A stretch of DNA of 64,000 nucleotides, taken from positions 2,852,001 to 2,916,000 of the forward strand of contig JAQFVV010000002.1 in NCBI GenBank assembly GCA_028023455.1, in the 5' to 3' direction. This stretch comes from Epiperipatus broadwayi (taxonomy: Eukaryota > Animalia > Onychophora). The notes beneath the pieces were generated by a model. It was not told the origin of the DNA. It was given only the letters and a program-made list of their open reading frames with translations, and ran no database searches. Shown here piece after piece: positions 29,806 to 55,610 of the stretch. Made by a program: the position numbers and the translations under genes. The number at the start of each line of letters is the position of its first letter. Positions within the stretch are counted from its first letter, which is position 1.

Positions 29806-32300
29806 TAGGGATTTGCAAACTTTTGGGACTGAAGAGCCAAATGTGACACACAACAATTTAAAAATTATTGGAGAGCCATGAATATATTTTTACAAATAAG
29901 GAAATTTAAAGAAATACTGTAACAAGTTACAATATTAAATATATCTTTATTAAATGTAGATTAAGTCACATGGAAAATTGCTAGCATTGGTTTTAATAAA
30001 TATGAACAATGAGCTTACATTTTCTTAGAAAGTTTCTGTATGTCCGTTTGATAACTAGCTAGTGCTTTTTAATTTAAGGCATGATTCCAAGTTGTCATCA
30101 GTAATTTTGTTCCTCAATTTACATTTAATAAAATTAATGTTAGAAAATGATTGTTCACATAAGTATGTAGATCCAAAAATACTGAGAATACCAAATGCAA
30201 ATTTTTTCAACTCATGATATGAATCTGGAAGATTAATCCAAGTAATAAAAATCATAAAGTCTGCCTTCTGTGGGTTTTTTATAGCACTCTGCTGGTTCTG
30301 TGAAAGCAGACTAAATTTTTCTTTTTCAAGTTCTTCCATATATAGGTGAACAAATTTGGAGCTCCATAAATCTTTGCTTGTCAAGTCCAGTAATTGTACT
30401 TCAAAATTACCTGCGTCAATATCAATTGGGGAAAATTTTAATTTTCTCACATTGGCATTAAGAGAATTTGTAATAAAAGCTAGAGTTGCTTTATCATTTC
30501 TAAATTCCTGAAACCTTTGAAGAAAAGATTCTCTTATGTTTAAAATTGTTGTCTTAAAATAATCTTTGTTTATGAGGGCATTGTTTTCTTGACAATATTG
30601 AGACAAATTTGGAAAATGAACTAAAGTTCGCCTATCTAAATCTTTATCAAATAGAATCAATTTCTTTTCAAACAAAATAATTTCTTCTACCAATGAAAAA
30701 GCAGTATTTCCTTTCTCTTGTAATTTATGATTGAGCTGATTCAGTTGTGATGTAATATCGATCACGAAATAAAATTTTTGCAACAACTGATATTTTGTTA
30801 ATTTTAAATATTAAACACCCTTGCTGTCGAGAAATAGTTTGATTTCATTTATGCAAAGAGTTTTAACATGTTGCCTCTGGAAAGCCATAAAACACTGTTA
30901 TATTGGAGATGATCTGAATACTCACTCTCCATTTCACATAGCAACACTTTAAATTGTCGGTGGTTGGGTCCTCTTGCTGCAATAAAATTAATTTATCTTG
31001 GTACCAAGTCCATAACTTTACCAATTTCTTCTGGAAATGTTTGTGCACAAAGTACTTCCTGGTGAAGTATACAATGGAAAGTAATCACTTCATTAATGTT
31101 TTCTTTTAAAATTGAAACAAACCCCTTTTTCAATCCCATCATACTTTTGACCCATCAGTTGCAATTAACACAATTTTATCAAGTATGGTATGGTTTTTTT
31201 CCATGCCGTCAATGACAGCATTTGATATGTTCTCTCCTTACATTGGCCCTTGAATGGCAATATTCCTAGAAGTTCTTGGACCCTCAGATGATATATACTA
31301 CACATAAAGGGAAATCTGGGTTGTGTTCTTGATGTTGAAAGACTCATCCACTGCAATTGACAAAGCTGAACATAATTTAATGTCCTTGTTTTGTTGGTTG
31401 CCACATTTAAGGCCATTTTAACTGTCCTATCTGCTACTGTTTTGGCATATAAAATCTCTGTTTTATTTTTGAAATCATGAAAAAGTTTTTCAGATGCTTT
31501 AATAAAACAAAATTTTATGTACTCACCATCTGTGAATGGTTTTCCTCTTCTAGCAATTTCCTGAGTTACTATGAAGCTTGCAATAGTAACGTTATTGGCA
31601 GACTGTCTCCAATAATCAAATATAAAACTTGATTTTTTAATATTTTTCTGATTGCTCTTTTTCTTGTATCACTAACAGAACATTTTATGGCAAATGAGGC
31701 ATGTTTTGTCATGAAGTATCTCTCCAAATTACACTTCTTGTTTTGTGCCAGTGTTTCTTGGCAAATTAGACATGTTGGAAGGCATTCCGAATTCACAATA
31801 AATGTGAAAGATTCAGTTTATTCAGTTTTAAAATCATGATGCTCATCCAATGTTTTTCTCAGTCTTTTTTTTTTTTGTAGTCATGTTGAAAAACACTTTT
31901 AAATATTGTATTTTATTTAATATGTTATATCCACATTTGCACAACTACACAAAAATGATACATTCCTCTTCTAGATTGTGAATTCACATTTGGCCATTGC
32001 TAACATTGTCTTATCCATCAGGGGGTAACCATGTGCTCACTTATTAATTGCAAAGTTTTGCTAGAGTTATAAAACATATAAAATCATAATTATATTAATA
32101 ATTTTTTTTTAAAAATTTTATAAATTGAAACTATGATAGTTTTATTTTCAATTTTACTACAAAGTAGGAGGTCTATATATCCTGGATTTGTCCTGATTTT
32201 ATCTTTATTTTTTATGATTTCATATTGCAATGTTTTGGATTTTTTTTTAATATTTGTTCCAATTAGGCCCTGTAGAAAAATATAGTCATTACTGAAGAGC

Positions 32301-33951: not shown

Positions 33952-36900
33952 AACAAAGAGAAGCTGACTCAGGCATTCTGAAGCACATCTCTAGATAAAG
34001 CTTAGTAATATGAAAAATGGCCTATGCTAACAATGCTTTTAAAAATAATATGAAATCATTCAGTTTAAATATTAACTTACAGCCTTAAATGGTTTAACAA
34101 ATACGTAACGATATGTTAAAATAAAGTCATTTATCAGAAGTTAAAACTATTATTAATGAAGCATGCATTTCTCCCCCTTCTTTAATCAATACTATTTTGT
34201 TTAAATATATAAAAAAAAAACTAAAATTCATGCACTTAAAAGTGCGAACAACAAAGTAGAATTTGTTCAACCGCCTTTTTGGCAATGATGATGATTAAAG
34301 AGATTAATAAAACTAATGGACACCAAAATCCACCCCAGATTGAAAAATATTTATACATTTTGTATAATTTTACGGTAAAATATATTTTAAAAAAAAGCAT
34401 ATATTCATTTTACAAGAAAGACTCAGACTTACAAACTATTTAGAATTAAGAACTTATTAACCCCCCCCCTTACTAAGTTCGTAAAACCGGGTTGGATTTG
34501 CATTTAAAAATAAAAGTTTAGTGAAAAATATAAAAATATTTAAAATAAATTATAACCGGATTAAATTATAGAAGAAAGTAAGAAGCGTGATTTGGATGAA
34601 ATATTTTACAATAATATTAGTTAGGGTTATAGAGAATCGATAACAAAAAAATAATTATTAGTTTTAACGTACTCACCAATGAGTGAGTTAAAGAGATTAA
34701 ATATATAGAAAACATTAATTTAAAGAGAGTTTACAAGTTATAATTTAAGTAGTACGATTATAATGATTTTTGGCTGGTTATCTCAGCATTCTATGGAATA
34801 CAGATGAATTTTCTGTGACAGGCGGCATTCTTTGACATGTCTCTTGGCCTCTGCAGTTCTTGGATGGCACAGGAACACTTGAATGGTAGAAGCTACATCG
34901 AGCATGGCGAAGAGTGGAGCTAAAGACAGACGGGAAGGCAGCTGAAGCCCCTCAAAAATTATACAGACATGAAATCGGTTAAAGACTATTGACCTAACTC
35001 TCTGGCACAATAGATTTTTAGGCCCTATTTATACAAAACTTTGAGGTGTTCAAAGAATGTTTTTTAATTAAACTTCTTATCTTTAATTTACAGAAATGTT
35101 TTACCTATTGTTAGTGGAGATGCAATCACTAGATAAGTATCCAAGAATAAATTCCAATCTATTTCTAGATTAGAAATAGATTTGATAAAAATGTTAATCA
35201 CTAACTAAAATCAAATAGCTTTGTTTTAAATTTTACTTTAATTTAAAAATTCCTTTTTAATTATGAAACAAAGTAATGTTCCAGCCCCTTTAATTATTCT
35301 TGGACAGTCGGTGATTGAATCTTCCATCTTGAATTTTTATGTGTTTATAAATGAAAAATATTAAAAAATAAATAACATATAGTTAAGAAAAAATACAAAA
35401 TTATTTACAAGATTTGTTTGTGCTTTTATATATATATATATATAAAAGCTCCGTTAATATATGTACATATCTGAGTCGCATCCATAAAAGTTAATATTTA
35501 AAATTAAAGAAACTTTTTTTTATTTGAGATTTGTATTTATAAACTTTTATAAACGCTTCTCAGAAACATACGTATAGTTTATATACATGTGACAAAAAAA
35601 CAGTGAGTTAAGTGGTAGACCAGTGGAGCTCGATCTTGGGCTAAGATTGACTGCTACATGTATAAATGTAAATCAGAAGAGATCATCCCTAAGGGTTTGC
35701 AGTTAAAACCTCCTATTTCTTCCAAGAGAGCAAATGAGGCCTTATTGAGAGAAAGTATAAAGGTTCAGCGATTTACCAAGTATCAAATATTGTGATCTAT
35801 TAGAAATGTGGAATCATTTCTACAAAACAAAGTTACAGATGAAGATATCTCAAAAATTTGTCAAGCAGTGAAGAGATCATATTGTAAGTTACATGGAAGG
35901 ATAAAAGAACTTCAGAAGAAGAAGCTTGTAAATCTACATGGGCAAGTCAAAAGTAATACTACTCTATCCTCATCATCAGTGAAAAATCTTAGTTCTAAAC
36001 ATCTTATTGATTGTGAATTATCAATTCTTAAAAAGGTTTGAATTTCACCATTATACCATCTACTGTCCCATTATTGGATGTAATGGCCACCACTGATGAG
36101 ATGACCCAAAATTTAAACTGCAGAAGAAGCAGCAGAGTTACACTGGAGAGTAAAAAGAACATTTGAAACACATCAAGTGCACAATCAGAAGTCAAACATT
36201 TCATGTGATGAGAGGAAAGCTATTAAATCTCTTAAACAGGATACATCTATAATCATTTTTTCTGCTGACAAAGGTAACACTACAGTTGTAATGGATAAAA
36301 CTGATTATGATAACAAAATACAAGGCCTTCTTTCAGGAGGCCAAACAATAAAATAGCAAAAAATTCAAGTACAGAGGTAAAAAAAAAAATTAACTTCGTA
36401 TTTCAGCAAGTTTCCTCACCTGTATGGACTGCCTAAAATTCATAAAGACAATGTTCCATTAAGAAATTCACCTTGTCAAAATTTGTCAAGATTTCTTCTC
36501 GAAGTTCTTAGTCCATTGGCATATAAGACACAGTATTTTGTCAGGGATTCTAAGCACTTTGTAGAATTAGTCAGGAACATGAAAATGGAAAGAACTAACA
36601 TATTGGTAAGCTTTGATGTTGAAACTCTGTTTACAAATGTACTATGTGATGAGGCATTGTCTACTGTAAGGAAAAGGTTATATGATGATAATTGTCTACA
36701 AACTAGAACAACTCTACCTATTGATAGTATAATGGAATTATTAACATTCTGTGTAATAACAACATACTTTCAATATAACTCAGAATTCTTTCAACAAAAT
36801 ATGTCACCCTTGCTCAGCAACATTTACATGGAAGAACTTGAAACCATAGCCATAAATACTACTCCATGTTCACCTAAAGTGTGGCTTCGATATGTTGATG

Positions 36901-37917
36901 ATACATTTGTGGTATGGCCACATGGTGAGGTAAAATTACAGTCATTCTGGATGCAGATTAACAACATATCTCTTACAATTAAATTCATGATGGAATCAGA
37001 ACAAGAACAAAAATTGGTATTCTTGGATGTTCTTGTGACAAGACTCTCTCAGGGCAAAGTAAAACCAACAGTGTATAGGAAACCAACACACACTGGCAAA
37101 TACTTGGCATATACATCCAGTGATACAAGAAGCACTAAACAAGGAATTGTACTATCACTATGAAACAGGGCAAAGGAGGTTTGTTCAGAAACCAGTGATT
37201 TGGAAAAAGATTCACATAGAACAAATGCTTATGAAGAATGGTTATCTTTCAGCAGTCATCAGAAAAACCTTCAATAGACAACACAAAGAGACACCAAAAA
37301 TAGAAAACAGTTATTGGTATGGTAGTGTATCCTTAAATACCAGGAATGGTGGACAAGTTAAAAAAAAATCTGCAGTCAGTATAACATTAGAACTGCTTTC
37401 CAAAGCCATACCACACTTCAAGGAATGCTTACTTCTACTAAGCCTAAACTGGAAATGCTGAAAAACAAAAACTGCATCTATGAAATACCATGTGAATGTA
37501 GAAGGAAATACACTGGTGAGACCTGTCGCCCTGCTGAACAGCGATTGAAGGAGCACAAACTAATTGTTAAAAGAGAAAAAACAGATGTGTCTACCATAGC
37601 AGATCATGTATGTACTAATGACCATATGCTTAAATGGGAAAATACAAATGTATTGTATAAAGAGGGGCAAATGCATAGAAGAAAATTCAAGAAAGCTGCT
37701 CATATGACAATGGTAAATAATCCTATAAGTAAACCCAGTGCGGCAATACACAATGTATGGAAGCCTCTAATTAATCTTGCTCTTAGGAAAAAATAAAAAA
37801 TAATAATAATTAGACTCGTTAAAATAAAAATAAAAAATAAATAAATTGGAGGACTCAGGAAGATTTGAACCAACCCTCATATATAAATATATCAAATTTC
37901 TACTATATGTTGCCTTT

Positions 37918-40349: not shown

Positions 40350-41835
40350 AGAAAATAATTTTCCAAATTAGAAAATATACCCGTTTGATACATTAGTTAT
40401 TATTATGACAAATTAATTTCATGATCAGAGCAAGAAGCTCATCGTTTAAACTTAGTCTATAATTATTGTTTTTAAAAATAATTAGTCAAGTAGTCTATAA
40501 TTATTGTGTACTAGTTTTATATCAGAACAACTGGCTCTTTATTTAGTGACTTAGCCAGTGATCATTGTGCAGTCCGTATTTTGATTGGCAGTGATCCTTT
40601 ATCATTCTCCATCTGTTGTGATCATTATTCTAATAATAAAACTATTGCAAGAAATTTTAGTTCCTTCATTTTCCATTGTAAAATTGTTATAGTCTTGATA
40701 ATTTTATAAATTTATTATAATAGGGACATAAATTTTACCTTTTTTACAGCTAATGTCATAGTTGAGCTTAAGAAAAATTGTAATTTTATTCACTTACCTA
40801 TAACAATACATTACTAATATGCCTAATTCACCAAAAAGTTTCTCAACTGAGAAGTCTTTGTTACTACAATAATATTTGACAAAAGTTTATGCAGTTAAGA
40901 CAGATAAGAAACTATATTATTGTCAAGCATGTAAATAAAAATAATTGAAACAAATGATATTAAGGAGGCTTTTAAATAACATCTAAAGACAATGACATTG
41001 CTTCTTAAAACATTTTGTTTCTTAGTATTAAATCAGGAACCCTGTATACTATTGGTTAAAAAGTAATTTTATTAACAATAAGTGATGGATTATGCATTAT
41101 GCTATACAAATCAACATGTAATATCACTAAAAAAATAATTCAGAAATATTATAGGGCAAAGAAGATTTGATATATTGACTTAAGATGTCGAAGACCATTT
41201 TATGTAAGTATACGAAAACACCTCAGTTCTTTTTATAGATTTTTGGCTATAAAATTTACAATATAAAATTTTTTTAAGATTTGCAAACTCATATTACTGG
41301 AGAATCAATATTTCATGCATTGACAAAGTCAGCAAATGAAAAAAAAAATCCTAATATTTTGTCAGTTACTAATAATGATACTCCAGCAATGATATGGCAC
41401 TAAAGAGGTTTTCTTGTATTCACTGTAACTGTCTTATTCAGCTACATTATTTAATCACCAAAAATCTGAGTATATTGAAAATGATGCAGAATTTATTCCC
41501 TGGCTGTTTCATGTACCATTTCTTTAACTGTCAAAAGATGACTGTTAGACCACTTTTATAAATTGTTTAACTAAGTGCTAGATTTTCTTACAAAAAAGAT
41601 GATACTTTATAAGCAAACTTGATTTATTTCAAATGTGATATCTTATTTGACATAGTGTTTTAATAAATTTAATGACACAAATCTACAGGATGGAATAGGC
41701 ATTTAATCAAAACAAAGGGAAATTCCATTAGTTTACAAATGTAACAATAGCACCCATTATTGTTACTTGGAGAGTCTCCATTCTGACTTCAATCAATGAT
41801 TTGAAAATATTATTAAAATGAACATACTTGATTGA
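40350..41835 (+). mobile_element. Decayed hAT (Buster/ZBED8/SCAND3-like) transposase, N-terminal part
   Basis: Remnants TIAEILVPS, SVTNNDTPAM, HCNCLIQLHYLITKNLS, KFNDTNL...LIKTK and [12 protein letters not shown] occur in the expected order. Confidence 0.7.
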
Positions 41836-42411
41836 AACAAAGATAATAAAAGGTAATAGAAAATGTAGTGAGAAGAATCGAGTTAATGTTGCATTTCTTA
41901 CTGCAAATCCTCCCCATAGTCAATTAACAGTTATTATTCCAATATATGGAATTGCTGATAAAAGGTTTGTAATTACGGTTGCTCCTCAGAAAGATATTTG
42001 TCCTCATGGTAGGACATAACCAAGGAATGCTGTTGCTATAGTTAATAGTAGAAGAATAATTCCAATATTTCATGTATAAATTAATTTATATGAGTTATAG
42101 TAAATTCCGCGTCCTACATGAATATATAGACAGATGAAGAAAAATGATGCTCCATTTCTGTGAAAAAATCGGATTAATGATCCATTATTCACATCTCTCG
42201 AGATGTAAATAATGGATCTAAATGCTAGGTCTATGTTATCTGAATAATGTATTGCTAATATAATTCCAGTAATAATTTGGAAGAGTAATGAGATGCCAAG
42301 TAATGATCCAAAATTTCATAAATATGAAATATTAGATGGGGTTGGTAAATCAATTAATCTATTATTTATAATTATTAGTAATGGGTGAGTTTTTCGTTCT
42401 GGTTTTATCAT
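41836..42411 (-). pseudogene. cob: Cytochrome b, 5' half only (mt code 5)
   Basis: ATG ATA AAA CCA GAA CGA AAA ACT CAC CCA...WNFGSLLG...WGQMSFWGATVITNL...[16 protein letters not shown], cut at the insertion junction. Confidence 0.95.
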
Positions 42412-42412
42412 A

Positions 42413-43342
42413 TTATCATAGCTGAATAATTTTATAATTTAAAATAATTATTAAAATTCTTAAGCTAATTGGTAAGAAAACTTTTCATGTTAGAAATATT
42501 AGTTTATCATATCGAAAACGTGGGTAAGAACCACGAATTCAAACAAATGCAAATGAAATTAGTGTTGTTTTAATTATTATGAAAAATGGGAAGTTTATAT
42601 TTCTTCCAAAAAAAATTATAGAAGTAATTATTCTTATTAAGAGAATACTTGAATATTCTGCTATGAAAATTATAGCAAATCTTCCTCTTCTGTATTCTGT
42701 GTTAAAGCCTGAAACTAATTCACTTTCTCTTTCTGCAAAGTCAAAAGGAGCTCGATTAGTTTCAGCTAGAATTGAGGAAAATCAGCAAATAAATAATGGT
42801 AATAAGATTATAAAGTTTCAGATTAATAATTGAGAATTATCAATAATTATAAGGTTATATCTTTCTGATAAAAAGATAATTGTTAATAAAATTAGAGCTA
42901 ATCTTACTTCATAAGAAATAGTTTGAGCTACTGCTCGTATTGTTCCAAGTAAGGAAAATTTTGAGTTGGATGATCATCCAGCTATTATTATAAAATAAAC
43001 TGTTATTCTAGTTATACATAAGAAAAATAATAATGCAAAATTAAAATTTATTGGGTTTCATTTTATTGGGATTAATATTCAAATAAATAATGAAATGATG
43101 ATTCTTATTATTGGTGCAATTAAGAAAGTTATTCGATTTCTTAGGTTTAATGATCTATTTTCTTTACAGAAAAGTTTTATTGCATCACTAATTGGTTGAA
43201 GAATTCCGATTAAACTAATTTTATTAGGGCCTTTTCGGATTTGAATATAACCAAGAATTTTTCGTTCAAGTAATGTTAAGAATGCTACTCTGATTAGGAT
43301 GGAAATTAATAGAATTAAATAGAAAATTAAAGATAAAATCAT
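42413..43342 (-). CDS. nad1: NADH dehydrogenase subunit 1 (mt-derived)
   Basis: 930 nt from ATG to TAA. Motifs [29 protein letters not shown] and [10 protein letters not shown]. Confidence 0.95.
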
Positions 43343-43385
43343 ATTTACGAAACTTAAATTCGTTACATTTTTCTGTCATGAAATT
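43333..43385 (-). tRNA. trnL2: mt trnL2 (UAA), T-arm apparently missing
   Basis: Anticodon arm ACGAA-TTTAAGT-TTCGT; D arm ACAG...TGT. Ends are approximate. Confidence 0.75.
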
Positions 43386-43399
43386 TGTTTAGTGTAAAT

Positions 43400-43468
43400 A
43401 AACTGCTTGTTTGCTTATTGATTGATTTACAAAATCAATATAATAATTTATTTAGAACTATTAGTTTA
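43400..43468 (-). tRNA. trnT: mt trnT (UGU)
   Basis: Anticodon arm TTGAT-TTTGTAA-ATCAA on the minus strand. Ends are approximate. Confidence 0.65.
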
Positions 43469-43512
43469 TAATATTGATTTGTGGAATCAAAGATTAATTG
43501 AAGGGTTTAGAT
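43453..43512 (+). tRNA. trnH: mt trnH (GUG)
   Basis: TTGAT-TTGTGGA-ATCAA, directly before nad5. Ends are approximate. Confidence 0.75.
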
Positions 43513-43527
43513 TTAAATTTAGAAAAA

Positions 43528-45187
43528 ATGTTTTGTTTTTTTTTTTTTGAATATTATTTGTTTGTAGAATTTATTTTTGTAATGAAAAATTAGTTTTTAT
43601 TTTTGAAATTGAATTATTAGAAGTTAATTCTAGAAGAATTATTATAACTATAATTTTTGATTGAATATCAGTAATATTTATAACTGTAATTTTTCTTATT
43701 TCTGGGTCTGTTATAAAATTTAGATGTGAATATATAGGAGAAGAAAAAAATAAGATACGTTTTTGTATTATTGTAATTTTATTTGTTATTTCTATAATTT
43801 TTTTGGTGGTTTCACCAAATTTGATTTCTATTTTATTAGGATGGGATGGTTTAGGATTAGTATCTTATGTATTAGTAATTTATTATCAGAATAATAAATC
43901 AAATAGAGCTGGAATATTAACGATTCTAAGAAATCGGATTGGAGATGTTGCTTTCTTAATTTGTATTGCATTTATATTGAATCATGGTAATTGAAATTAT
44001 TTTTCGATGAGTTGGTTAGATATAAATATTATTAATGTTATGATTGTATTAATATTATTAGCTGGAATAACTAAAAGTGCTCAAATTCCTTTTTCGGCAT
44101 TGGTGCCGCCATAGCGGCACCAACTCCTGTATCAGCATTAGTTCATTCATCAACATTGGTTACTGCTGGGGTTTTTTTATTAATTCGTTTTTCTGAATTT
44201 TTCATAGTAGAAATGTCATTTAAAGTTAGTTTATTGTTTATATCAAGGTTAACTATAATAATGGCCAGAATTGTAGCTAATTTTGAATATGATATTAAAA
44301 AAATTATTGCTTTATCAACTCTTAGGCAGCTTGGGCTAATAATAAGTATTGTATCTTTAGGATTTTCTACTTTAGCATTTTTTCATTTGTTGACACATGC
44401 GGTTTTTAAAGCATTATTGTTTATTTGTTCTGGAAGAATTATTCATAATTTTAATCATGTTCAGGATGTTCGAATACTTGGATTTGTAACTAATCAATTA
44501 CCCAAAGTTAGGATTTGTTTGAATACGGCAAATTTGGCTTTATGTGGAATTCCATTTTTAGCTGGATTTTATTCTAAGGATATAATTTTAGAAATATATT
44601 GTTATAGAAATTGGAATTTTATTTCATTTTTAATATTATTTGTTGCTACTTCAATAACAGCATCTTATTCTATTCGAATAGCTTATTTTTCATTTTGAAA
44701 AAAAATTCATTCAAAGAGAATAAATTCGGTTTTTGAAGGAAGAAGAGATATTAGTGATTCTGCAATAATAATAAGTTTGGGGGCTGTTGTTGGTGGGTCA
44801 ATTTTTAGATGAATAATTTTTAGAAGAGTACCTCATATTGAATTAATTTTTTTATTAAAAATTTTAACATTAATAGTTACTTTTATTGGTGGTGGTTATA
44901 TACTTTGTTTTCAAATAGAGTTTTTTTTTAAAAAAAACTCGTTTTTTTTCTCTCAAATATGATTTTTTCCAAAAATTAGGTCTCAGGTGTTTATAAAATT
45001 AATTATAAAATGAAGAAAGTTTTCTTTTGAAAAAATTGATTCTTTATGAATTGAGTCAATAGGACCTCAAAATATATATTTCACTGTGGTGAAAGGTTCA
45101 ATAATATTGCAAATTATTCAGAAGAATTCAGTAAAAACATATTTGTTTAGGATTATCATTTTGGTTTCTTTTATTATATTTTTTTTA
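43528..45187 (+). CDS. nad5: NADH dehydrogenase subunit 5 (mt-derived, frameshifted in this consensus)
   Basis: LGWDGLGLVSY, NRIGD, TKSAQIPF, APTPVSALVHSSTLVTAG, ALSTLSQLG, CGIPFLAGFYSKD. Frameshifts at the poly-T (43537-48) and at 44100-44110. Confidence 0.93.
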
Positions 45188-45245
45188 TATGAATATAGCT
45201 CTTAGCATATTGTTGAAGACAATAAGATGCAACAATAAATTTTTA
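45188..45245 (+). tRNA. trnF: mt trnF (GAA)
   Basis: TATTG-TTGAAGA-CAATA. Confidence 0.8.
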
Positions 45246-45252
45246 GTTAGAA

Positions 45253-45305
45253 ACTAATAATAACTAATTTAAGAATCAATAAATTGTAAATTTATTAAAT
45301 TTTTA
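45253..45305 (+). tRNA. trnY: mt trnY (GUA)
   Basis: ATAAA-TTGTAAA-TTTAT. Confidence 0.6.
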
Positions 45306-46190
45306 TGACTCGCCTTTTTTTTTTGGCGAGTCGATGTAAAAAAGAATTTGTATTGTATGGGTTAACATATAAAATGTAAAATTTTTTTTGAGAATAATTA
45401 AATATTGGTTATTTTTTACTAGAAAAGTTTTTTTAATAGTAAATATTAAATATGGTTATATATTTAAATTATAAAGTTTAATTTGCGTTTAAAAGTTGAA
45501 TGATTATTTGTAAGCAATTTGCTTTTAATTGTTAATTAAAAAGTTAGCCAGATTTGGTGTACATTGATGATGTATATATATATATATATAAAAACTTATT
45601 GATGCAATTAATATATCAAGGGTATAAGTGATTTCGCGCAAATGCGTAAAATATGAATCGTGTCAAAACAAAAAAAAGTATATTAATGAGTAGAAAATAA
45701 TGACAATAAAAATTAATATTTACATGTTCTAGAATTCGTGGACTTAATTTAATGGTATTGCATAGTTGTATAGTAAAATTTTCTTAAGTAGCGGTTAAGA
45801 GATTTATAAAAATAATTAGATTTTAATCTAATATTTTCTAAATAATACAATAAAACTTAATTGAAATTATTTATTTGACATTAATATAAAGTATATACTA
45901 TCACATATATAACATGATTGTTTTATATTTTTATATAATAGAATTAACCATAATATTAATATATATTATTAATAATATATATTAATATTATGGTTAATTC
46001 TATTATATAAAAATATAATTACATCTAATAATAATTATTTAATTATATTCAAATATAAATAATACTAATTATTTTTTTCTAAATTAAATAATATGATATC
46101 TAATACATCGACTCGCCAAAAAAAAGGCGAGTCATAAAATATATTCATTATTATAATTCTTTATGATAAAATTTTTAGAATTATGTATTA
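45301..46190. promoter_or_regulatory. mt control region (may hide further tRNAs), bounded by inverted stem-loops
   Basis: Non-coding, very AT-rich, with TA repeats. A GACTCGCC-(T/A)n-GGCGAGTC hairpin sits at each end. Confidence 0.8.
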
Positions 46191-46195
46191 ATCAT

Positions 46196-46699
46196 TTAAA
46201 TTAGGGTTCGAATCGGGCCGTCCGAAAGACGGCAGATTTTAACTACTCTAATTAAGCAAAGAAGGAGATATAACGCTAGAAAAATTGTAATTTTTCTAAT
46301 GTTTTCGGCAAAAAATCTTGTATAAGAAAAACTTTGATTTAGTTCAATTTGTTCAAAAAGTTGTATTGAGTCTGAATTAAATGAGAATTCATTTAAAATA
46401 ATTAGTATTGGTGAAAAAATGAAAAATCATCTTATTCAGATTAATTTTGTTGGTCAAGACAATCTAAAAAAAAATTTTTCGTTTCTTGCTATACTGGTAG
46501 TATAGAGAAATAGAATTAAAAGTCCTCCTAAGTAAATTAAAATGATTACATAACTATATCAGAAATTTTGTGAGTTTATTCCAATTAAAATAGATAATGG
46601 AATTACGTAGATGATAATTGAGATTCCTATTGAAATAGGATGATTTATTAGGAAAAATCATATTCCAACAGTTAGTGTTAAAAGATAAAGGATTGTCAT
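46196..46699 (-). CDS. nad6: NADH dehydrogenase subunit 6 (mt-derived)
   Basis: 504 nt from ATG to TAA. Motifs NHPISMG, WYSYVIILIYLGGLLILFLYTTSMASNE and GPIR. Confidence 0.92.
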
Positions 46700-46745
46700 A
46701 AGTTAAATTCTAAATTTAAAATCTTATTGTTAGATTAAATTTCCA
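46695..46745 (-). tRNA. trnL1: mt trnL1 (UAG), truncated
   Basis: TTAAA-TTTAGAA-TTTAA; D arm AATCT/AGATT. Confidence 0.7.
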
Positions 46746-47420
46746 TTTAATCTACTTTGTTTCGACTTTTCTTGTTTTTGCAAGAATGACGGGCGATATG
46801 TACATATTAATGTTAATTTTCAATTTATCATGATAATGTGATTTTACTAGCAAATTCTGTTTTTAAAAATTTTTCAATTTTTTATATATAAATATAGATT
46901 AATGTAATTCATTTCATCTTAATAAAATTGCACCTTGACCTGATTTAATAGGTTATTCTATTTTGAGATTAATTTTAAGTAATTTCGTATACGGTGGTAT
47001 ACAAATAAGTATTAAGTAAGGTAAGTCGTGTGTTGTCGATTTAGAAACAAATTCCTTTGAAAAAGTTAGTACCGTCAAATTTATTTTGTTATGTTTCTTT
47101 GAAATATTATTTTATAGTAGAATAGCAGGGTATCTAATCCTGGTTTTGAACTAAATTTAGAATTATTTTAATAATATTATTATTAGAAATTTCATTTTTA
47201 AGAAAAATATGGTTAAATTTATTTATTCAGAAAAAATTAATTTATAATGACGTATAACCGCTGCTGCTGGCACGTATTTGGCCTCTAATAGTTTTTAGAT
47301 TAAAAGTAATTTATTACTTATGGTTTTGTTAATAAAAGGTTGTTTTTAATTAAAATTTTATGAAAAGTTTAAAAAGTTAATTTGTTTACATAAATTAAAT
47401 AAAAGATTTAAGAATTAGTT
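46746..47420 (-). rRNA. rrnS: mt 12S rRNA
   Basis: Reverse complement contains GTGCCAGCAGCAGCGGTTATAC, AGGATTAGATACCCTGCTATT, TACATATCGCCCGTCA and AAGTCGAAACAAAGTAG. The 5' end is approximate. Confidence 0.93.
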
Positions 47421-47429
47421 TTATAAGAA

Positions 47430-48420
47430 TTGTGTATTTTATATATGAGTATATAATAATTATATTGTTTTAAGTGGTTTTATGTAAAAATTGAAAAGGA
47501 ATTATTAAAATTTATAAAGTAATTTATTGTACTTTTTGCATAATGGATGTATGATTAATGGTTAAATTAATATCTCTAAAAAAATTGATCTCTTTTTTTT
47601 GAAAAATTGTTGCATAAATTTTTTTTAAAAGAAATTTAGAAGTGAAATGCTATCGAAATTTTTGATATATAGTTCTTAAAAATTCACTATAGGTGATTTA
47701 ATAAATTTATTAAAAACATTAATGGTTTAGCATTAATGTTTNNNNNNNNNNNNNNNNNNNNNNNNNNNNNNNNNNNNNNNAAGTTTGGTTAATGTACTCT
47801 TTCCCTACAGTTCAGACGTGTGCTCTTCCGAGGAATTCAGCAAAAGTTGTTTCATCAGTTTATCAAAAACATAGCTTTATGAAAATATTTAGGGTATTGT
47901 CTGCTCAATGAGCATTAAATTGCCATGGTATTTATGACTATGCTAAGGTAGCATAATCATTTGTCTTATAAATTAAGACTGGAATGAATGGATAAATGGG
48001 GCAATTCTTTCTTAGGTTAAAAATTAAAAATAATCTTTTTAGTGAAGAGACTAAAATGAGATTGAGGGACGAGAAGACCCTATTAAGCTTAATATAATTA
48101 TTATGTTGGGGAAACAAAAGAGTATATTTTCTTTTGAAATATTTTTTGATAAATGTTGATTTATTATTAATAATAATAGAATAAGTTACTATAGGGATAA
48201 CAGCATAATTTTTTTTAAAAGTTCTTATTTACAAAGAAGATTATGACCTCGATGTTGGATTAGAAATATTATATGGTGAAGTTGTTGTATAAATTAGTCT
48301 GTTCGACTATTAAATTTCTACATGATCTGAGTTCAAATCGGTGTAAACCAGATTGGTTTCTATCTTCAGATATTTTGTGTTAGTACGAAAGGACCACATG
48401 AAGTTTTTTAATGAGTAGAT
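47430..48420 (+). rRNA. rrnL: mt 16S rRNA (contains an N-gap and adapter sequence)
   Basis: AAGGTAGCATAATCATT, GACGAGAAGACCCTA, AGGGATAACAGC, ACCTCGATGTTGGATT, CATGATCTGAGTTCAAATCGG and TAGTACGAAAGGAC. Confidence 0.93.
47796..47831 (+). other. Illumina TruSeq adapter fragments (assembly artefact)
   Basis: ACTCTTTCCCTACA (read-1 primer piece) fused to GTTCAGACGTGTGCTCTTCCGA (read-2 primer piece), next to the N-gap at 47742-47780. Confidence 0.97.
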
Positions 48421-48482
48421 TGAACTCTTATAGGTGAATATATAGACTTTGGAAGTCTAAGATGAATGATTTTTCAATTAAA
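48418..48482 (+). tRNA. trnP: mt trnP (UGG)
   Basis: TAGAC-TTTGGAA-GTCTA. Confidence 0.8.
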
Positions 48483-48483
48483 A

Positions 48484-48762
48484 ATTTTAATTCCAATTAT
48501 ATTTGTTATTTTTGGTGTTATTACATTTATTATGTATCGGTTACATTTATTATCAATGTTATTAAGATTGGAGTTTATTATATTGAATATTTTTTGAGTC
48601 ATGATGTCATGACTAGTTTTTTTAGGTAAAGAATTATTTTTAAGTTTAGTTTTTTTAACTTTAACTGCTTGTGAGGCTAGTTTAGGTTTATCATTAATGG
48701 TTAGGTTAATTCGTAGTCATGGAAATGATTTATTTAATAGTTTAAGAATTGTTAGATGATAG
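48484..48762 (+). CDS. nad4L: NADH dehydrogenase subunit 4L (mt-derived)
   Basis: HLLSMLLSLEF, ACEASLGLSLMVSLIRSHGND. 7-bp ATGATAG overlap with nad4. Confidence 0.92.
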
Positions 48763-50109
48763 AAATTTTGATAATATTTATTATGTTAGTTGTTATGTGA
48801 GTATTTAAGTTAATACGTTGAGGATTTATGTTAAATGTGATATTAATTATTATAGAGATCGGAAGAGCACACGTTAAATATTTACATGTTTGTATCAAGA
48901 ATTTCTGGCGTATTTGGTGTTGATATGGTTTCTATACCGTTATCAATATTAAGAATATTGACTTGTGTATTAATGATGTTTGCTAGGATAAAAGTTTTGT
49001 TGAAAGATGATTATAAGGATTTTTTTTGTTTATTAATTTTAATCTTGAATGCTGTTTTGTTTTATACTTTTGTTGCTTTAAATATTTTAGTGTTTTATGT
49101 TTTGTTTGAGTTTACTTTAATTCCTACAATTCTTTTGATTATAGGTTGAGGTTATCAGCCTGAACGTTTACAGGCCATGTTATACTTATTGTTTTACACT
49201 TTATTTGCTTCTTTTCCATTATTAATAGGAGTAATTGGAATGTATTGGTGAATAGGAAGAATGTCTATTATTATGTTGATGAAAAGTTATTTTTATATGA
49301 GGGAATTTATGATACTATATTGAGTTATTTGTATGTCAGCTTTTTTGGTTAAATTACCAATTTATGTTGTTCATATTTGGCTTCCTAAGGCTCATGTAGA
49401 AGCACCAATTTCTGGTTCAATAATTTTGGCTAGAGTTTTGTTGAAATTAGGAGGTTATGGTGTTATTCGTTTTTCAATGATTTTTAAAATAATTACAGTT
49501 AAATTTAGTGAGTTTTTTATTTGTTTAAGGTTGTTTGGAGGAATTATAACTAGAATGATTTGTATTCGACAGGTTGATTTAAAAGCATTAATTGCTTATT
49601 CTTCTGTTGGGCATATGGGGTTAATGATTAGATCAGTTTTTGTTATATGTAAATGAAGAGTTAATGCAGCTATTTGAGTCATGGTGGGACATGGTTTTTG
49701 TTCTTCCGGTTTGTTTTGTTTATCAAGAATTTCTTATGAGCGATATCATTCTCGTAGGATGATGGTTTCTAAAGGAATGATTAGGTTATTTCCTAGGTTA
49801 AGGTTGTTTTGATTTTTGTTTGTTATTGCTAATATTGCAGCTCCACCTTCTTTGAATTTGTTAGGAGAAATTGGTGTTATTAATTCTTTGGTTTTTTGAA
49901 ATAACATTAGAATTGGTTTGTTAGTTTTTATTTCGTTTTTTGGTGCTGTATATAGAATGTATTTGTACTCATATACTCAGCATGGTCAGATATTTTTTAA
50001 TTTAAATAGTATGAAATCAATTAGATGTGTTGAGTATCTTTTGTTATTTTTACATTTGTTACCATTGAATTTGTTGTTGTTGAAATCTGAGTTTTTAATA
50101 GTTTATTAG
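48756..50109 (+). CDS. nad4: NADH dehydrogenase subunit 4 (mt-derived, frameshifted by an adapter)
   Basis: [62 protein letters not shown]. Confidence 0.95.
48856..48874 (+). other. Illumina adapter AGATCGGAAGAGCACACGT inside nad4 (artefact)
   Basis: Exact match to the TruSeq read-through adapter. Confidence 0.98.
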
Positions 50110-50152
50110 AATTTTTAATTGGAAATTAAATGTAATATATACTTATATGTCT
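50095..50152 (-). tRNA. trnG: mt trnG (UCC)
   Basis: rc TTTAA-TTTCCAA-TTAAA with D arm AGTA..TAC. Confidence 0.75.
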
Positions 50153-50205
50153 TTTGGATTAATTAAAGCTTTGAAGGCTTTTAGTTTTGTTAACTTATTT
50201 GGTTA
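50150..50205 (-). tRNA. trnW: mt trnW (UCA)
   Basis: rc AAGTTAACAAAACT-AAAAGC-CTTCAAA-GCTTT, a canonical trnW. Confidence 0.8.
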
Positions 50206-50248
50206 TTTTTGAATTATGAATTCAAAAGCTTTTTTAGCTTATTGTGAA
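50195..50248 (-). tRNA. trnM: mt trnM (CAU)
   Basis: rc AAGCT-AAAA-AAGC D arm, then TTGAA-TTCATAA-TTCAA. Confidence 0.75.
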
Positions 50249-50297
50249 CTATAATTTAAACTTCAAAAGTTTAAGTGTCAAACACTTATGAATTTTC
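50245..50297 (-). tRNA. trnQ: mt trnQ (UUG)
   Basis: rc AGTG-TTTGA-CAC D arm, then TAAAC-TTTTGAA-GTTTA. Confidence 0.7.
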
Positions 50298-51288
50298 CAT
50301 ATTTTTTTTTGTTTTATTTTTTGTTAGTATTTAGTTTAATAATTCAGATAAGAATAAGTTCATGAGTTTTTATTTGAGTTGGTTTAGAGATGAATATATT
50401 GTGTATTATTCCTATTTTAGTTAGTGGAATTAAAAATATGAATGAGAGGGCAGTTAAGTATTTTATTATTCAAGTATTTGGTTCAATTATTTTATTAATT
50501 GGGTTTTTTTTAAGGACTATGTTGTTAATAAGTTATTATTATTATGATGTGATTGGATATGTTTTTTGAATATCTATAATATTAAAAGTAGGTGCTGCAC
50601 CTTTTCATTTTTGGTATCCTGGTGTTTTGGAAAATTTAAGATGAATAAATATTTTTTTGATAATAACAGTCCAAACTTTTGGACTGTTATTTATTATAAG
50701 GTATTTATTAAGGTTTAGTATTTATTTAATATTTAGGGTAATATTAAGAGTGGTTATTGGAGGAGTTGGAGGATTTAATCAAGTAATAATACGTAGTTTG
50801 TTTGCATATTCGTCTATTGGTCATGTTGGTTGGATAATTGTCTCTATTATGTTAAGAGATTCTGTTTGGGTTATTTATTATTTGTTTTATTTTATAATAA
50901 TAATATTATTTAGAATTTTATTTTATTTTAATGGGATTGTTTATATTAATCAAATATTTATTTACTTTTCTAAGTTTGAGAAGTGGGTTATTTTGTTAAG
51001 AATACTTTCTTTAGGTGGTTTTCCACCTCTTAGTGGGTTTTTTCCTAAGATTATAGTGTTAAATATTTTGATATTAAAGGGTGAGAAGATTTTGGTGTTA
51101 ATAATGTTAATGGGGATATTGATTGGATTATATTATTATATTCGTTTGATATATGTTAGAATAATGTTTGAGACATTAAGGTCATTATGTTATTTTAAAG
51201 TAAAAAAAAATTTGATATTAGATTGGTGATTACATATTTTGATAATGGTAATATTGTTTATTATTCCTGTTGGAATAATTTGATTTTA
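50288..51288 (+). CDS. nad2: NADH dehydrogenase subunit 2 (mt-derived)
   Basis: WVGLEMN, KYFIIQ, KVGAAPFHFWYP, SLFAYSSIGHVGW, LSLGGFPPLSGFFPK. Incomplete TA stop. Confidence 0.93.
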
Positions 51289-52818
<1,530 letters not shown>

Positions 52819-52819
52819 T

Positions 52820-53497
52820 ATGGCAAGATGAAATGAGTTGATATTTCAGGATGCGTCTTCTCCTTTAATGGAGCAGTTGATTTTTTTTCATGATCATTCT
52901 TTATTTGTTTTAATTTTGATTACAATTTTAATTGGGTATAGAATATTAAGTTTAATTTTAAATAAAAATTTAATGCGATATTTGTTGGAAGGTCAATGGA
53001 TTGAAATGGTTTGAACAGTTTTACCTGTATTTATTTTAGTATTTATTGCTTTTCCATCATTACATTTATTGTATATGTTGGATGAGGTTTCTGATCCATT
53101 TTTAAGAATTAAAGTTGTAGGGCATCAATGATACTGAAGGTATGAATATAGAGATTTTATTGATGTTGAGTTTGATTCATATATAATTAGTATAGATGAT
53201 TTAGAGTTAGGTGATTTTCGGCTCCTTGATGTTGATAATCGGTTGATTTTACCATTTTGTGGTCAAATTCGTTTTTTAATTAGGGCTGCTGATGTATTAC
53301 ATTCTTGAACTGTCCCATCATTAGGAGTTAAGGTTGATGCGGTTCCTGGACGTTTAAATCAGATTGTGTTATATTTAAATCGAGTTGGATTATTTTATGG
53401 ACAATGTTCTGAAATTTGTGGTGCTAATCATAGTTTTATACCTATTGTTATTGAATCAATTCCAATAAATTTTTTTGTTAAATGGATTATAAGGTAA
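52820..53497 (+). CDS. cox2: Cytochrome c oxidase subunit 2 (mt-derived)
   Basis: 678 nt from ATG to TAA. Motifs [24 protein letters not shown] and [15 protein letters not shown]. Confidence 0.97.
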
Positions 53498-53545
53498 AAG
53501 GTATAATTTATAAAAATATAAATATGTCAAATTTAAAATGAATTC
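53496..53545 (+). tRNA. trnD: mt trnD (GUC), truncated
   Basis: TAAAT-ATGTCAA-ATTTA. No trnK precedes it. Confidence 0.7.
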
Positions 53546-53700
53546 CTCAGATGTATCCGTTAAGTTGAATGTTAATAATACCATTAAGACTTTTTGTTAT
53601 GTTAATTTATTTAATTTTAGTTTATTATTTGATTAAATATTTAAAGTATCAGGTCAAATTTTTTAGTCAGAAAAAAATTATTTGTTTTTGGGAATGATAA
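53542..53700 (+). CDS. atp8: ATP synthase F0 subunit 8 (mt-derived)
   Basis: ATT CCT CAG ATG (MPQM). 7-bp ATGATAA overlap with atp6. Confidence 0.92.
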
Positions 53701-54369
53701 TAGGGTTATTTAATGTTTTTGATCCTTCTTCAAGAGTTTATATATTAAGATTAAATTGGATTTCTTTAGTGATTGGAATTTTTTTTATTCCTTTATGGTT
53801 TTGATTAATTCCTACTCGTTTAGTAGGGATTATAAATTTTGTGTTAAATTTTTTAAATAATGAATTTAAAATTCTTTTGATAATAAGGAATATTAAAGGA
53901 ATAACATTAATTTTTATTAGTTTGTTTTTTATGATTATATTGAATAATAGATTAGGTTTGATACCTTATGTGTTTACAAGAACAGCACATTTGTTAGTTA
54001 CTTTAAGATTAGCTTTTCCTTTATGAATTAGTTTTTTGATTTATGGGTGAGTAAATAAAATAATAATAATGTTTGCTCATTTAGTTCCTTTAGGAACTCC
54101 TTCAGTATTAATATCATTTATGGTTTGTATTGAGACAATTAGAAATTTTATTCGTCCCTTAACTTTATCTGTTCGATTAGCGGCAAATATAATTGCTGGG
54201 CAGTTGTTATTAAGGTTAGTTGGAGGTCAAGGAAGAATTTTAGGTACAATAATATTATTTGTTTTATTGTTTGGTCAAACATTATTAATAATACTTGAAA
54301 GGGCTGTTTCTGTTATTCAATCATATGTTTTTGTTGTTTTAAGAAGTTTATATTCAAGTGAGGTATATT
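53694..54369 (+). CDS. atp6: ATP synthase F0 subunit 6 (mt-derived)
   Basis: [33 protein letters not shown]. Incomplete T stop. Confidence 0.95.
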
Positions 54370-55155
54370 ATGATAATACATAATCATCCATATCATATGG
54401 TTGAGTTGAGTCCATGACCAATTATTGGGGCGTGTGGGGCGTTATTATTAACAGCTGGATTAGTAAATTGATTTCATAATTATATAATAGGGTTATTATT
54501 AATAGGAATATTTATTATTCTTTTAACAATAATTCAATGATGACGTGATGTCATTCGTGAAGGAACATATCGGAACTTCATACTACTAATGTAGTATTTG
54601 GTCTTCGATGGGGTATGGTTTTATTTATTTTATCAGAGATTTTATTTTTTTTCAGATTTTTTTGGGCATTTTTTCATAGAAGTCTTGCTCCTACAATAGA
54701 TTTAGGTTCATATTGACCACCATCAGGTGTAATAGTTTTGAATCCATTTCAAGTTCCTTTGTTAAATACTGCTGTATTATTGGCTTCTGGTGTTACTGTA
54801 ACTTGAGCTCATCATAGTTTGATGGAAAGAAATTATATTCAGGGGGTTCAGGGATTATTTTTTACTGTTTTATTAGGATTGTATTTTACTTTATTACAAG
54901 GGATGGAATATTATGAATCAAGATTTTCTATTTCTGACTCAGTTTATGGAACAACGTTTTTTGTTGCTACTGGATTTCATGGATTACATGTAATTATTGG
55001 TAGTAGATTTTTATTAATTTGTTTGATACGGCAATTTAATTATCAGTTTTTCAGAATTGTGATCTTTTGGATTTGAGGCTTCTGCCTGATATTGACATTT
55101 TGTTGATGTTGTTTGGTTGTTTTTGTTTATTTCAATTTATTGATGAGGGTCATAA
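54370..55155 (+). CDS. cox3: Cytochrome c oxidase subunit 3 (mt-derived; two compensating frameshifts)
   Basis: [60 protein letters not shown]. Confidence 0.95.
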
Positions 55156-55512
55156 ATTATAATGTTAGTGTTAGTGATTATATTTTTTGTTGTATTTTTA
55201 ATTGTTTTAGTATTGATAATATTTATGTATTTATTTTCTGAGAAAAGGTATAAAGATCGTGAAAAAAATTCTCCTTTTGAATGTGGATTTGATCCTTTTA
55301 GATCCAGGCGATTACCTTTTTCTTTACGATTTTTTTTAATTGGAATTATTTTTTTGATTTTTGATATTGAAATTGTTTTAATTTTACCTTATCCTAATAG
55401 GATAAGTTAATTCAGGTTAGAAGAATATATTTGGTTGGACAATTATTTTTGTTTATTTTACTCCTTGGTTTAATTCATGAATGAAATCAAGGAGCTCTTG
55501 ATTGAGCAATTT
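55156..55512 (+). CDS. nad3: NADH dehydrogenase subunit 3 (mt-derived; one frameshift)
   Basis: [40 protein letters not shown]. Confidence 0.93.
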
Positions 55513-55562
55513 ATTTACCAAAACAAATGTGTTTAGTTTCGACCTTAAGTGTAACTTGAACT
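55510..55562 (+). tRNA. trnR: mt trnR (UCG)
   Basis: TTTAG-TTTCGAC-CTTAA. Confidence 0.6.
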
Positions 55563-55610
55563 TATATATTTTGTTTTCAAAACAAATTCTTTCGTAAGAT
55601 TAAGAAAAAT
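55550..55610 (-). tRNA. trnS2: mt trnS2 (UGA)
   Basis: rc TCTT-ACGA-AAGA D arm, then TTTGT-TTTGAAA-ACAAA. Its strand and position fit the ancestral cob-S2 adjacency across the circle. Confidence 0.7.

Follow-up and report, generated by a model that had tools for sequence, protein, structure and literature searches.

The question raised by this locus is whether the unusual mitochondrial gene order found in it is new, arose by accident at insertion or assembly, or is the order that velvet worms are already known to carry. The window analysed is a stretch of 64,000 nucleotides of Epiperipatus broadwayi DNA. At positions 41842-55603 it holds 13 mitochondrial protein genes, both rRNAs and tRNAs. 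The homology of this block to a mitochondrial genome was recognized by its Pfam families and by best database matches, which were peripatid mitochondrial proteins. The block and its protein and rRNA genes are as follows.

41842-55603, plus strand: whole putative nuclear copy (NUMT), 13,762 bases; own-genome matches start and stop there, and the C50 copy served for comparison of the junctions
41842-42411, minus strand: cob, 5' part only, ~190 codons (Pfam Cytochrome_B, 1.8e-24)
42413-43342, minus strand: nad1 (Pfam NADHdh, 9.9e-21)
43520-45202, plus strand: nad5 (Pfam Proton_antipo_M and NADH5_C)
46196-46699, minus strand: nad6 (table-5 ORF; weak Pfam Oxidored_q3)
46751-47520, minus strand: rrnS, 5' end uncertain (530-loop, 790-loop and 1400-region motifs in the correct order)
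47831-48417, plus strand: rrnL, recognisable 3' part, i.e., domains IV-V, 5' limit uncertain (Rfam, motifs)
48418-50109, plus strand: P, nad4L and nad4 (ARAGORN, Pfam), with nad4L at ~48466-48762 and nad4 at 48756-50109 (both Pfam)
50288-55515, plus strand: nad2, cox1, cox2, D, atp8, atp6, cox3 and nad3 (Pfam; ARAGORN for D; atp8 by translation)

The gene map given in an earlier note, made from the letters of the sequence, agreed in order and strand with the results of Pfam, ARAGORN, rRNA motifs, Rfam and the anticodon-arm scan. In the Pfam search of stop-free pieces, 12 mitochondrial protein families were matched, i.e., cob, nad1 and nad6 on the minus strand, nad5, nad4L, nad4 and nad2 on the plus strand, and cox1, cox2, atp6, cox3 and nad3 as noted before. 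The nad5 match includes NADH5_C, the nad4 match includes Oxidored_q5_N, and the nad6 match (Oxidored_q3) was weak. No Pfam match was obtained for atp8, which was identified between D and atp6 by table-5 translation and shows the N-terminal PQM-P--W signature usual for this gene. The 1-nt spacer described between nad1 and cob was confirmed exactly, with the TAA of nad1 at 42415-42413 followed by a single T and the ATG of cob at 42411. The 3' part of cob was lost at the insertion break, and the C50 copy has the full cob of 380 codons.

The note had described an order strongly rearranged against the arthropod ground pattern, strand switches in blocks and a plus strand rich in G+T, and the gene map bears all three out. 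The ground-pattern series nad3 -nad5 -nad4 -nad4L nad6 cob -nad1 -rrnL -rrnS is absent from the block, where -cob -nad1 nad5 -nad6 -rrnS rrnL nad4L nad4 was found. Counted by hand from the gene map, eight of the 15 protein/rRNA gene boundaries differ from the ground pattern. Compared with this pattern in Limulus polyphemus, the nad2-cox1-cox2-atp8-atp6-cox3-nad3 block and the nad4L-nad4 pair are kept, whereas inversion relative to the nad2-nad3 block has affected nad5, nad4, nad4L, nad6, cob and rrnL, rrnS and rrnL stand head to head, many tRNAs have moved, and the strand bias is reversed. The plus strand, which carries cox1, is G+T-rich; its composition is A 32.1, C 8.7, G 16.4 and T 42.8 (AT 74.9%), and its GC skew is +0.305 overall, ranging from +0.21 to +0.40 along the block.

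The tRNA genes and the noncoding elements were placed as follows.

43322-43519, mixed strands: tRNA cluster L2-V-T-H as a whole (ARAGORN, anticodon-arm scan)
43322-43385, minus strand: L2 (ARAGORN)
43387-43403, minus strand: arm of truncated V (anticodon-arm scan)
43422-43438, minus strand: arm of T (anticodon-arm scan)
43450-43519, plus strand: H (ARAGORN)
45187-45613, plus strand: F, Y, a hairpin element, then truncated A, N, I and possibly C (ARAGORN relaxed, arm scan)
45301-45338: GC hairpin element, 38 nt
45875-46198: probable control region
45923-46018: perfect palindrome of 96 nt inside the probable control region
46104-46139: inverted copy of the 38-nt GC hairpin element, also inside the probable control region
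46677-46745, minus strand: L1 (ARAGORN)
50088-50294, minus strand: G, W, M and Q, an overlapping, truncated cluster (ARAGORN relaxed, anticodon arms)
within 55516-55603, plus strand: R, anticodon TCG, arm at ~55529-55545 (read by eye)
within 55516-55603, minus strand: S2, from 55536, cut by the insertion junction (ARAGORN; junction comparison)

ARAGORN in mitochondrial mode detected L2(-), H, L1(-), P, Q(-), D and S2(-), and a relaxed threshold added F, G(-), W(-) and M(-). In bacterial mode, the same program detected no tRNAs. T(-) and Y were added by the anticodon-arm scan, and R was identified by eye, as the window of the scan stopped short of it. The tRNAs listed earlier are thus present, but two groups were missing from the list: V(-), truncated and located between T and L2, and, at 45477-45613 on the plus strand, A, N, I and possibly C. 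Because of the latter, the region previously labelled as control region is in part a tRNA cluster; the label holds for ~45875-46198, which is variable and palindromic. In the comparison of copies, this probable control region was the fastest-evolving stretch of the block, and positions 45450-45575 were 96-100% conserved across old copies. V, A, N, I and R consist of only anticodon arms and short 5' parts, and the predicted cloverleaves of G-W-M-Q overlap. The block has all three clusters, R-S2, L2-V and G-W-M-Q.

The rRNA genes were located by motifs. On the minus strand, universal small-subunit motifs were found at 47255-47273, 47128-47140 and 46787-46799; the plus strand has large-subunit motifs starting at 47853. 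Rfam returned nothing at E<=1 for the whole block; with 1-kb slices, positions 1889-2714 of the LSU model matched 47853-48367 on the plus strand. Neither the SSU nor the 5' part of the LSU was matched anywhere with Rfam. Absence should not be concluded from this, since the 5' domains of mitochondrial rRNAs rarely match such models. From rrnL domains IV-V to the head of the opposite-strand rrnS there are at most ~300 bases, including a hypervariable patch of 40 bases, and a conserved stretch of 300 bases at 45576-45875 has no gene assignment. An extremely short rrnL (~0.9 kb or less), or a split one with its 5' half encoded elsewhere, is quite unlikely. Split rrnL occurs in oysters but is not known from panarthropods.

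The earlier note did not recognise the order and proposed a comparison with myriapod and chelicerate orders. The host is a peripatid velvet worm and belongs to neither group, and the order matches the published derived order of Peripatidae (PMC13116273, PMC2998192); the possibility, also raised in the note, that it was already published for this taxon holds at the genus and family level. Peripatidae are reported to share a single stable derived order, in which R-S2, L2-V and G-W-M-Q form tRNA clusters and the GC skew is globally positive; for E. biolleyi the composition is 32.0, 8.6, 17.3 and 42.1 (A, C, G, T) with a GC skew of +0.334 (PMC13116273). The boundaries atp8-atp6, nad1-L2 and cob-S2 were reported as retained in the re-annotation by Rota-Stabelli et al. 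2010 of NC_009082 (E. biolleyi, Podsiadlowski et al. 2008) (PMC2998192).

Accession serials were used as anchors of this order. The best protein matches were to E. biolleyi, i.e., nad2 62% (next best 42%), nad3 73% and nad4L 79%; the Oroperipatus match of nad4L was 78%. The spacing of the serials was predicted from the window order as a cyclic protein order of nad3, four genes, nad4L, one gene, nad2, five genes and back to nad3. This order was found: in YP_001083072 (nad4L), ..074 (nad2) and ..080 (nad3), nad4L equals nad2 - 2 and nad3 equals nad2 + 6, where the ground pattern would place nad4L at nad2 - 4 in place of nad2 - 2. A second E. biolleyi record, ADK97560 (nad3), ..565 (nad4L) and ..567 (nad2), also fits the window order. 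The comparison assumes that accession serials follow the record order, and the ABF series (289, 290, 292) departs from simple position. By the published text, three accession anchors, the tRNA clusters and composition, the order of the block is very probably the published Peripatidae order.

The reading implied earlier, i.e., a new, unpublished order of an unrecognised arthropod, could draw on the eight differing boundaries and on the list of eight velvet-worm mitogenomes published in 2026, in which E. broadwayi is absent (PMC13116273). However, the host is E. broadwayi, the derived order of Peripatidae is published as family-wide (PMC13116273), and tRNA clusters, skew, composition and the E. 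biolleyi serials all fit Peripatidae, which makes this reading very improbable.

An origin of the order at insertion or assembly had been named in the note as a possibility that would refute it. NUMTs can be rearranged or concatenated, and some copies in this genome are longer than one unit or wrapped around the circle. Nevertheless, at least 10 other copies (C33, C50, C6294, C7925, C12443, C12398, C5, C6225, C12586 and C12571), 85-99% identical and with differing end points, are collinear over 4-10 kb and cover the cob-S2 junction that is absent from the window. One order was found in all copies examined, whatever their age or end points, and scrambling during or after nuclear insertion is therefore extremely improbable. 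Because these copies with different ends are collinear, the order is that of the source mitochondrial genome, not an accident of insertion or assembly.

Both flanks lie in the same contig as the block and contain dispersed nuclear repeats, with hAT and reverse-transcriptase fragments nearby; the right flank begins with 460 unique bases. The scaffold exceeds 31 Mb. There is no 500-N scaffold gap in the window, because its sole N run is 39 bases. A further copy with the same gene order, 91% identical but with other end points and another apparent age, lies on the same scaffold (~C2:8.15 Mb). No empty insertion site was found among paralogous repeats. The source circle is ~14,327 bp, and the block, opened inside cob, is without the 567 bp from the S2 end to mid-cob.

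The block also has ~7 frame breaks. By alignments and exact adapter 12-mers, at least two of them, probably four, are adapter patches. The affected sites are as follows.

47742-47830: 39 N (masked adapter) and 50 bases, standing for 88-89 native bases in clean copies
48855-48873: adapter patch breaking the nad4 frame
51600-51604: probable adapter patch in cox1
52575-52599: adapter patch in cox1
54572: probable adapter patch in cox3
55046-55064: scrambled patch, not recognisably adapter

Positions 47795-47830 are pieces of both Illumina adapters. Since clean paralogous copies have 88-89 native bases there, the flanks of the N gap are continuous and no gene was lost. The break of the nad5 frame near 44101-44110 is a 4-nt gap relative to other copies. 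A natural DNA end as the cause of the adapter hot spot at the rrnS/rrnL junction was rejected, as patches occur at several unrelated sites. The E. broadwayi assembly (~5.6 Gb, 18,588 scaffolds) was made from ONT reads with Flye, medaka/HyPo and SALSA2. Illumina adapter sequence very probably entered the consensus during polishing, and one adapter stretch was subsequently N-masked.

Long stretches of the block are 100% identical to other copies, and more than 80% of the substitutions against other copies are at third codon positions, in both directions. Judged from the sequence, this bias is characteristic of evolution inside mitochondria and not of decay in the nucleus. The bias and the near-identity together indicate that the assembled letters may be a mosaic of insert and organellar reads; the consensus was probably mixed with abundant organellar reads. 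Dating of the insert by identity was rejected, as the consensus looks mosaic.

The same observations bear on whether the assembler stitched organellar DNA into a nuclear scaffold, either by way of chimeric long reads or by following a path in the repeat graph via an older, shorter NUMT. Near-100% identity over most of the block, the purifying-selection signature of the substitutions, adapter patches as a sign of heavy influence of very deep organellar reads, and the all-mitochondrial small contigs in the assembly, e.g., C11771, would agree with stitching. However, each end breaks off cleanly within a gene and borders unique nuclear sequence, all in a single contig and without a scaffold gap. 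In addition, the leftmost ~220 bases retain older character states that also occur in copies of the 91-93% class, which would be expected if reads anchored at the junction represent the true insert, and many undoubtedly old NUMTs show that such insertions are common in this genome. Stitching is thus unlikely. It is very probable that the block is a near-complete NUMT of E. broadwayi carrying the Peripatidae mitochondrial order, and that the N gap and several frame breaks are adapter. The mitochondrial circle would have been opened inside cob and 13.76 kb of it inserted in the nucleus, where the NUMT would have no role, and its gene order would be that of the living mitochondrial genome.

The result has little weight as a discovery; for peripatids, the rearranged order, the reversal of the strand bias and the truncation of tRNA genes have been in the literature since 2008-2011, with family-wide confirmation in 2026. 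Its meaning lies in E. broadwayi, a species without a published mitogenome in the 2026 list, which has the family order, and in its 5.6-Gb genome, where dozens of large NUMTs occur that the genome paper does not mention. Large NUMTs are a potential source of contamination in barcoding and mitogenome assembly. In mitochondrial-like regions of the public assembly, Illumina adapter has been polished into the sequence, and apparent frameshifts and the N gap in such regions should not be taken as pseudogene decay.

The closest known system is E. biolleyi NC_009082, of the same genus, with near-identical composition and GC skew, the same atp8-atp6, nad1-L2 and cob-S2 boundaries, and a circle of 14,411 bp against ~14,327 bp here. 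However, E. biolleyi is another species, its nad2 is ~62% identical in the table-11 reading, and the window holds a nuclear copy without 567 bp. The Peripatidae order of E. barbadensis, Oroperipatus sp. and E. biolleyi shows the clusters, positive skew and truncated tRNAs that are also found here. Standard tools detected 14 tRNAs in E. barbadensis (PMC13116273), the same number as was listed in the earlier note. Velvet-worm mitochondrial tRNA genes are, according to the citation of Segovia et al. 2011 in PMC13116273, truncated and edited post-transcriptionally. The truncated genes are alike in the block, but editing is not visible at the DNA level, and the nuclear copy is not expressed as tRNA.

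The mitochondrial block at 41842-55603 holds open frames of the expected mitochondrial set in invertebrate-mitochondrial translation. Since translation in the tools follows table 11, stop-free pieces were submitted to Pfam. The families found were Cytochrome_B, NADHdh, Proton_antipo_M with NADH5_C (nad5), Oxidored_q2 (nad4L), Oxidored_q5_N with Proton_antipo_M (nad4), Proton_antipo_M (nad2), Oxidored_q4, COX1, COX2_TM with COX2, ATP-synt_A, and COX3, and nad6 gave a weak match to Oxidored_q3. No Pfam match was obtained for atp8 in the block, and its translation carries the customary N-terminal signature. Every family lay on the strand stated in the earlier note, which was made from the sequence alone; the note's gene order was also correct, and its 1-nt spacer between nad1 and cob was exact. 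Compared by hand with the arthropod ground pattern, i.e., the arthropod mitochondrial gene order, the order keeps the nad2-nad3 stretch and the nad4L-nad4 pair (7 of 15 protein/rRNA boundaries); nad5, nad4, nad4L, nad6, cob, and rrnL are inverted relative to the nad2-nad3 block. The note's account of genes moving between strands is a complementary description of the same facts.

The tRNA genes L2, H, L1, P, Q, D, and S2 were detected by ARAGORN in mitochondrial mode, and F, G, W, and M were added at a relaxed threshold. T and Y were added by an anticodon-arm scan, i.e., 5-bp stems flanking 7-nt anticodon loops, and R was recognized by eye in the printed sequence. The earlier map had lacked V (minus strand, between T and L2) and a plus-strand group following Y, made up of A, N, I, and possibly C. 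K, S1, and E were not placed among the tRNA genes of the block. The region that had been mapped as control region is partly a tRNA cluster, 96-100% conserved among old copies, and its variable part is 45875-46198. Inside this variable stretch lies a perfect 96-nt palindrome (45923-46018), whose second arm differs in the copy on contig C12398. A 38-nt hairpin element, whose GC stem is 8 bp long and whose loop is T10/A8, was found at 45301-45338, with an inverted copy at 46104-46139. The two copies, about 765 bases apart, bracket the tRNA cluster and control region, with the palindrome between them.

Motifs of the small-subunit rRNA were found on the minus strand, those of the large subunit on the plus strand. 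In Rfam, the plus strand at 47853-48367 matched positions 1889-2714 of the large-subunit model. Recognizable rrnL is limited to its 3' part, domains IV-V (47853-48417), and at most about 300 bases (interval 47520-47830) separate this part from the head of rrnS. There is very little adjoining space for a 5' half. The interval contains a hypervariable patch (47733-47773) and a possible trnC arm on the minus strand (47604-47620). Elsewhere, no gene is assigned to 45576-45875, a conserved stretch of 300 bases. The simplest reading is a short rrnL of about 0.9 kb, with a split gene as a less likely alternative.

The single N run of the window, 47742-47780, sits between the heads of rrnS and rrnL, outside any reading frame. 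The 50 bases 3' of it are partly native, and 47795-47830 consists of pieces of both Illumina TruSeq adapters. Twenty related loci of the same genome were compared, anchored on 150 bases on each side of the gap. Three clean copies (L002, L012, and L015) have 88-89 native bases in place of the 39 N and 50 bases of the window, and in other copies the site is occupied by 26-47 N or by visible adapter ends. A scaffold gap was rejected, as native bases of the clean copies fill the site and this assembly marks its genuine scaffold gaps with 500 N; no such gap occurs in the window. Because the copies show native bases, N runs, or adapter ends there, the N run is a masked adapter, and both sides are continuous in mitochondrial coordinates. 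The N runs of the other copies likewise look like masked adapters, and adapter sequence was seen at this junction in loci L002, L003, L004, and L014. Directly left of the N run is an 11-bp perfect hairpin (47715-47741), and in L004 a fold-back of neighbouring sequence is fused to an adapter end at this point, which suggests hairpin-related library artefacts.

The block was matched at dozens of places in its own genome with 84-100% identity. In the copies on contigs C33, C50, C6294, and C7925, the 55603 end continues through about 567 bases to the 41842 end. The C50 copy identifies this segment as the 3' part of cob, and cob is intact there, with 380 codons, and directly adjoins S2. Because copies run from the right end of the block into its left end, the source is a circle of about 14,327 bp, and the window copy is this circle opened within cob, minus 567 bp. 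Rearrangement at insertion or by the assembler is excluded because ten further copies, with differing end points and 85% to 99% identity, are collinear with the block over 4-10 kb.

The flanks of the block bear dispersed nuclear repeats. One dispersed repeat of about 70 bases (41765-41834), of which many scaffolds hold copies 86-95% identical, stops about 8 bases or less from the left junction. The sequence upstream also contains a C-terminal fragment of a hAT transposase (30058-30786, minus strand) and a reverse-transcriptase fragment (36483-37160, plus strand). Nuclear mitochondrial copies (NUMTs) arise by capture of mitochondrial DNA fragments at chromosome breaks, and the block would have originated in this way. 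As a nuclear insert it is without function. Across the genome, dozens of kilobase-scale NUMTs have 84-100% identity, and first-look candidates exceed 800 per half genome. Examples lie at C12398:9.84-9.85 Mb, C5:4.30 Mb, C6225:7.96 Mb, C6294:3.14 Mb, C50:7.35 Mb, C33:7.65 Mb, C2:8.15 Mb, and C2:31.55 Mb. Several run around the circle and are possibly longer than one unit. Contig C11771 (6,929 bp; locus L005) is solely mitochondrial, running from nad3/R/S2 via the whole cob to rrnS with 97-99% identity. It displays the cob-S2 junction missing from the window and is possibly a fragment of the actual organellar genome.

The window differs from its nearest copies in clusters: most 200-base windows were 100% identical, and the dense clusters were adapter sequence.

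Adapter sequence in the block
48855-48873, start of the TruSeq adapter, nad4 broken
52575-52599, reverse complement of the TruSeq adapter start, cox1 broken
51600-51604 and 54572, probable short adapter ends, at frame breaks

Two exact matches to adapter 12-mers lie in the window (0.02 expected by chance), and the block contains both. Such adapter in the consensus displaces native bases and breaks reading frames in mitochondrial-like DNA. Frame breaks in nad5 near 44105, cox3 near 55050, and nad3 near 55400 have no visible adapter. The Epiperipatus broadwayi assembly (5,601,407,943 bp in 18,588 scaffolds) was made from ONT reads with Flye, polished by medaka and by HyPo with Illumina reads, and scaffolded by SALSA2; the word "mitochondria" is absent from the text of the genome paper (PMC9985152). 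The adapter patches probably arose in polishing, through untrimmed organellar reads of very high depth.

The remaining scattered substitutions were polarised using older copies. Third codon positions account for 23 of the 28 coding substitutions derived in the window and 26/32 of those derived in other young copies. This excess is the mark of change within working mitochondria. The left-most 220 bases of the block retain older states; over this stretch the window is 99-100% identical to copies whose identity elsewhere is about 93%. Most simply, the consensus would be a mosaic of the true insert and organellar reads. Reads anchored at the junctions would carry the true insert, which is somewhat older, and very deep organellar reads would have overwritten the interior in consensus and polishing. 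The "pseudogene" lesions of the insert are largely technical. Because the consensus looks mosaic, its identity is unfit for dating the insert.

The earlier note did not recognize this order, but it is the known peripatid gene order, carried in a NUMT. For three encoded proteins, the top database hits were peripatid mitochondrial proteins, i.e., nad2 (E. biolleyi, 62%; next best 42%), nad3 (E. biolleyi, 73%), and nad4L (E. biolleyi, 79%; Oroperipatus sp., 78%). The window order predicts, in accession serials, nad4L two CDS before nad2 and nad3 six after, whereas the ground pattern predicts nad4L four CDS before nad2. The E. biolleyi RefSeq serials (nad4L YP_001083072, nad2 ending in 074, nad3 in 080) and an independent second record (nad4L ADK97565, nad2 ending in 567, nad3 in 560) were as predicted from the window order. 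The ABF series of the first GenBank record (289, 290, 292) was left out, being not in simple positional order. The serials agree with the window order at three anchors, short of full proof for the inner cob/nad1/nad5/nad6 order.

According to PMC13116273 (2026), the three sequenced Peripatidae have one stable derived arrangement in common, with a GC skew that is positive globally and with the tRNA clusters R-S2, L2-V, and G-W-M-Q; truncation and editing of the genes limit standard annotation to 13-14 tRNAs. All three clusters are present in the block. Its composition (A 32.1, C 8.7, G 16.4, T 42.8%; AT skew -0.142, GC skew +0.305) is close to that of E. biolleyi (A 32.0, C 8.6, G 17.3, T 42.1%; AT skew -0.135, GC skew +0.334). 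For E. biolleyi, PMC2998192 describes multiple rearrangements, a positive skew in cox1-3, atp6, nad2, and nad3, and conservation of the boundaries atp8-atp6, nad1-L2, and cob-S2; the block shows all of these features.
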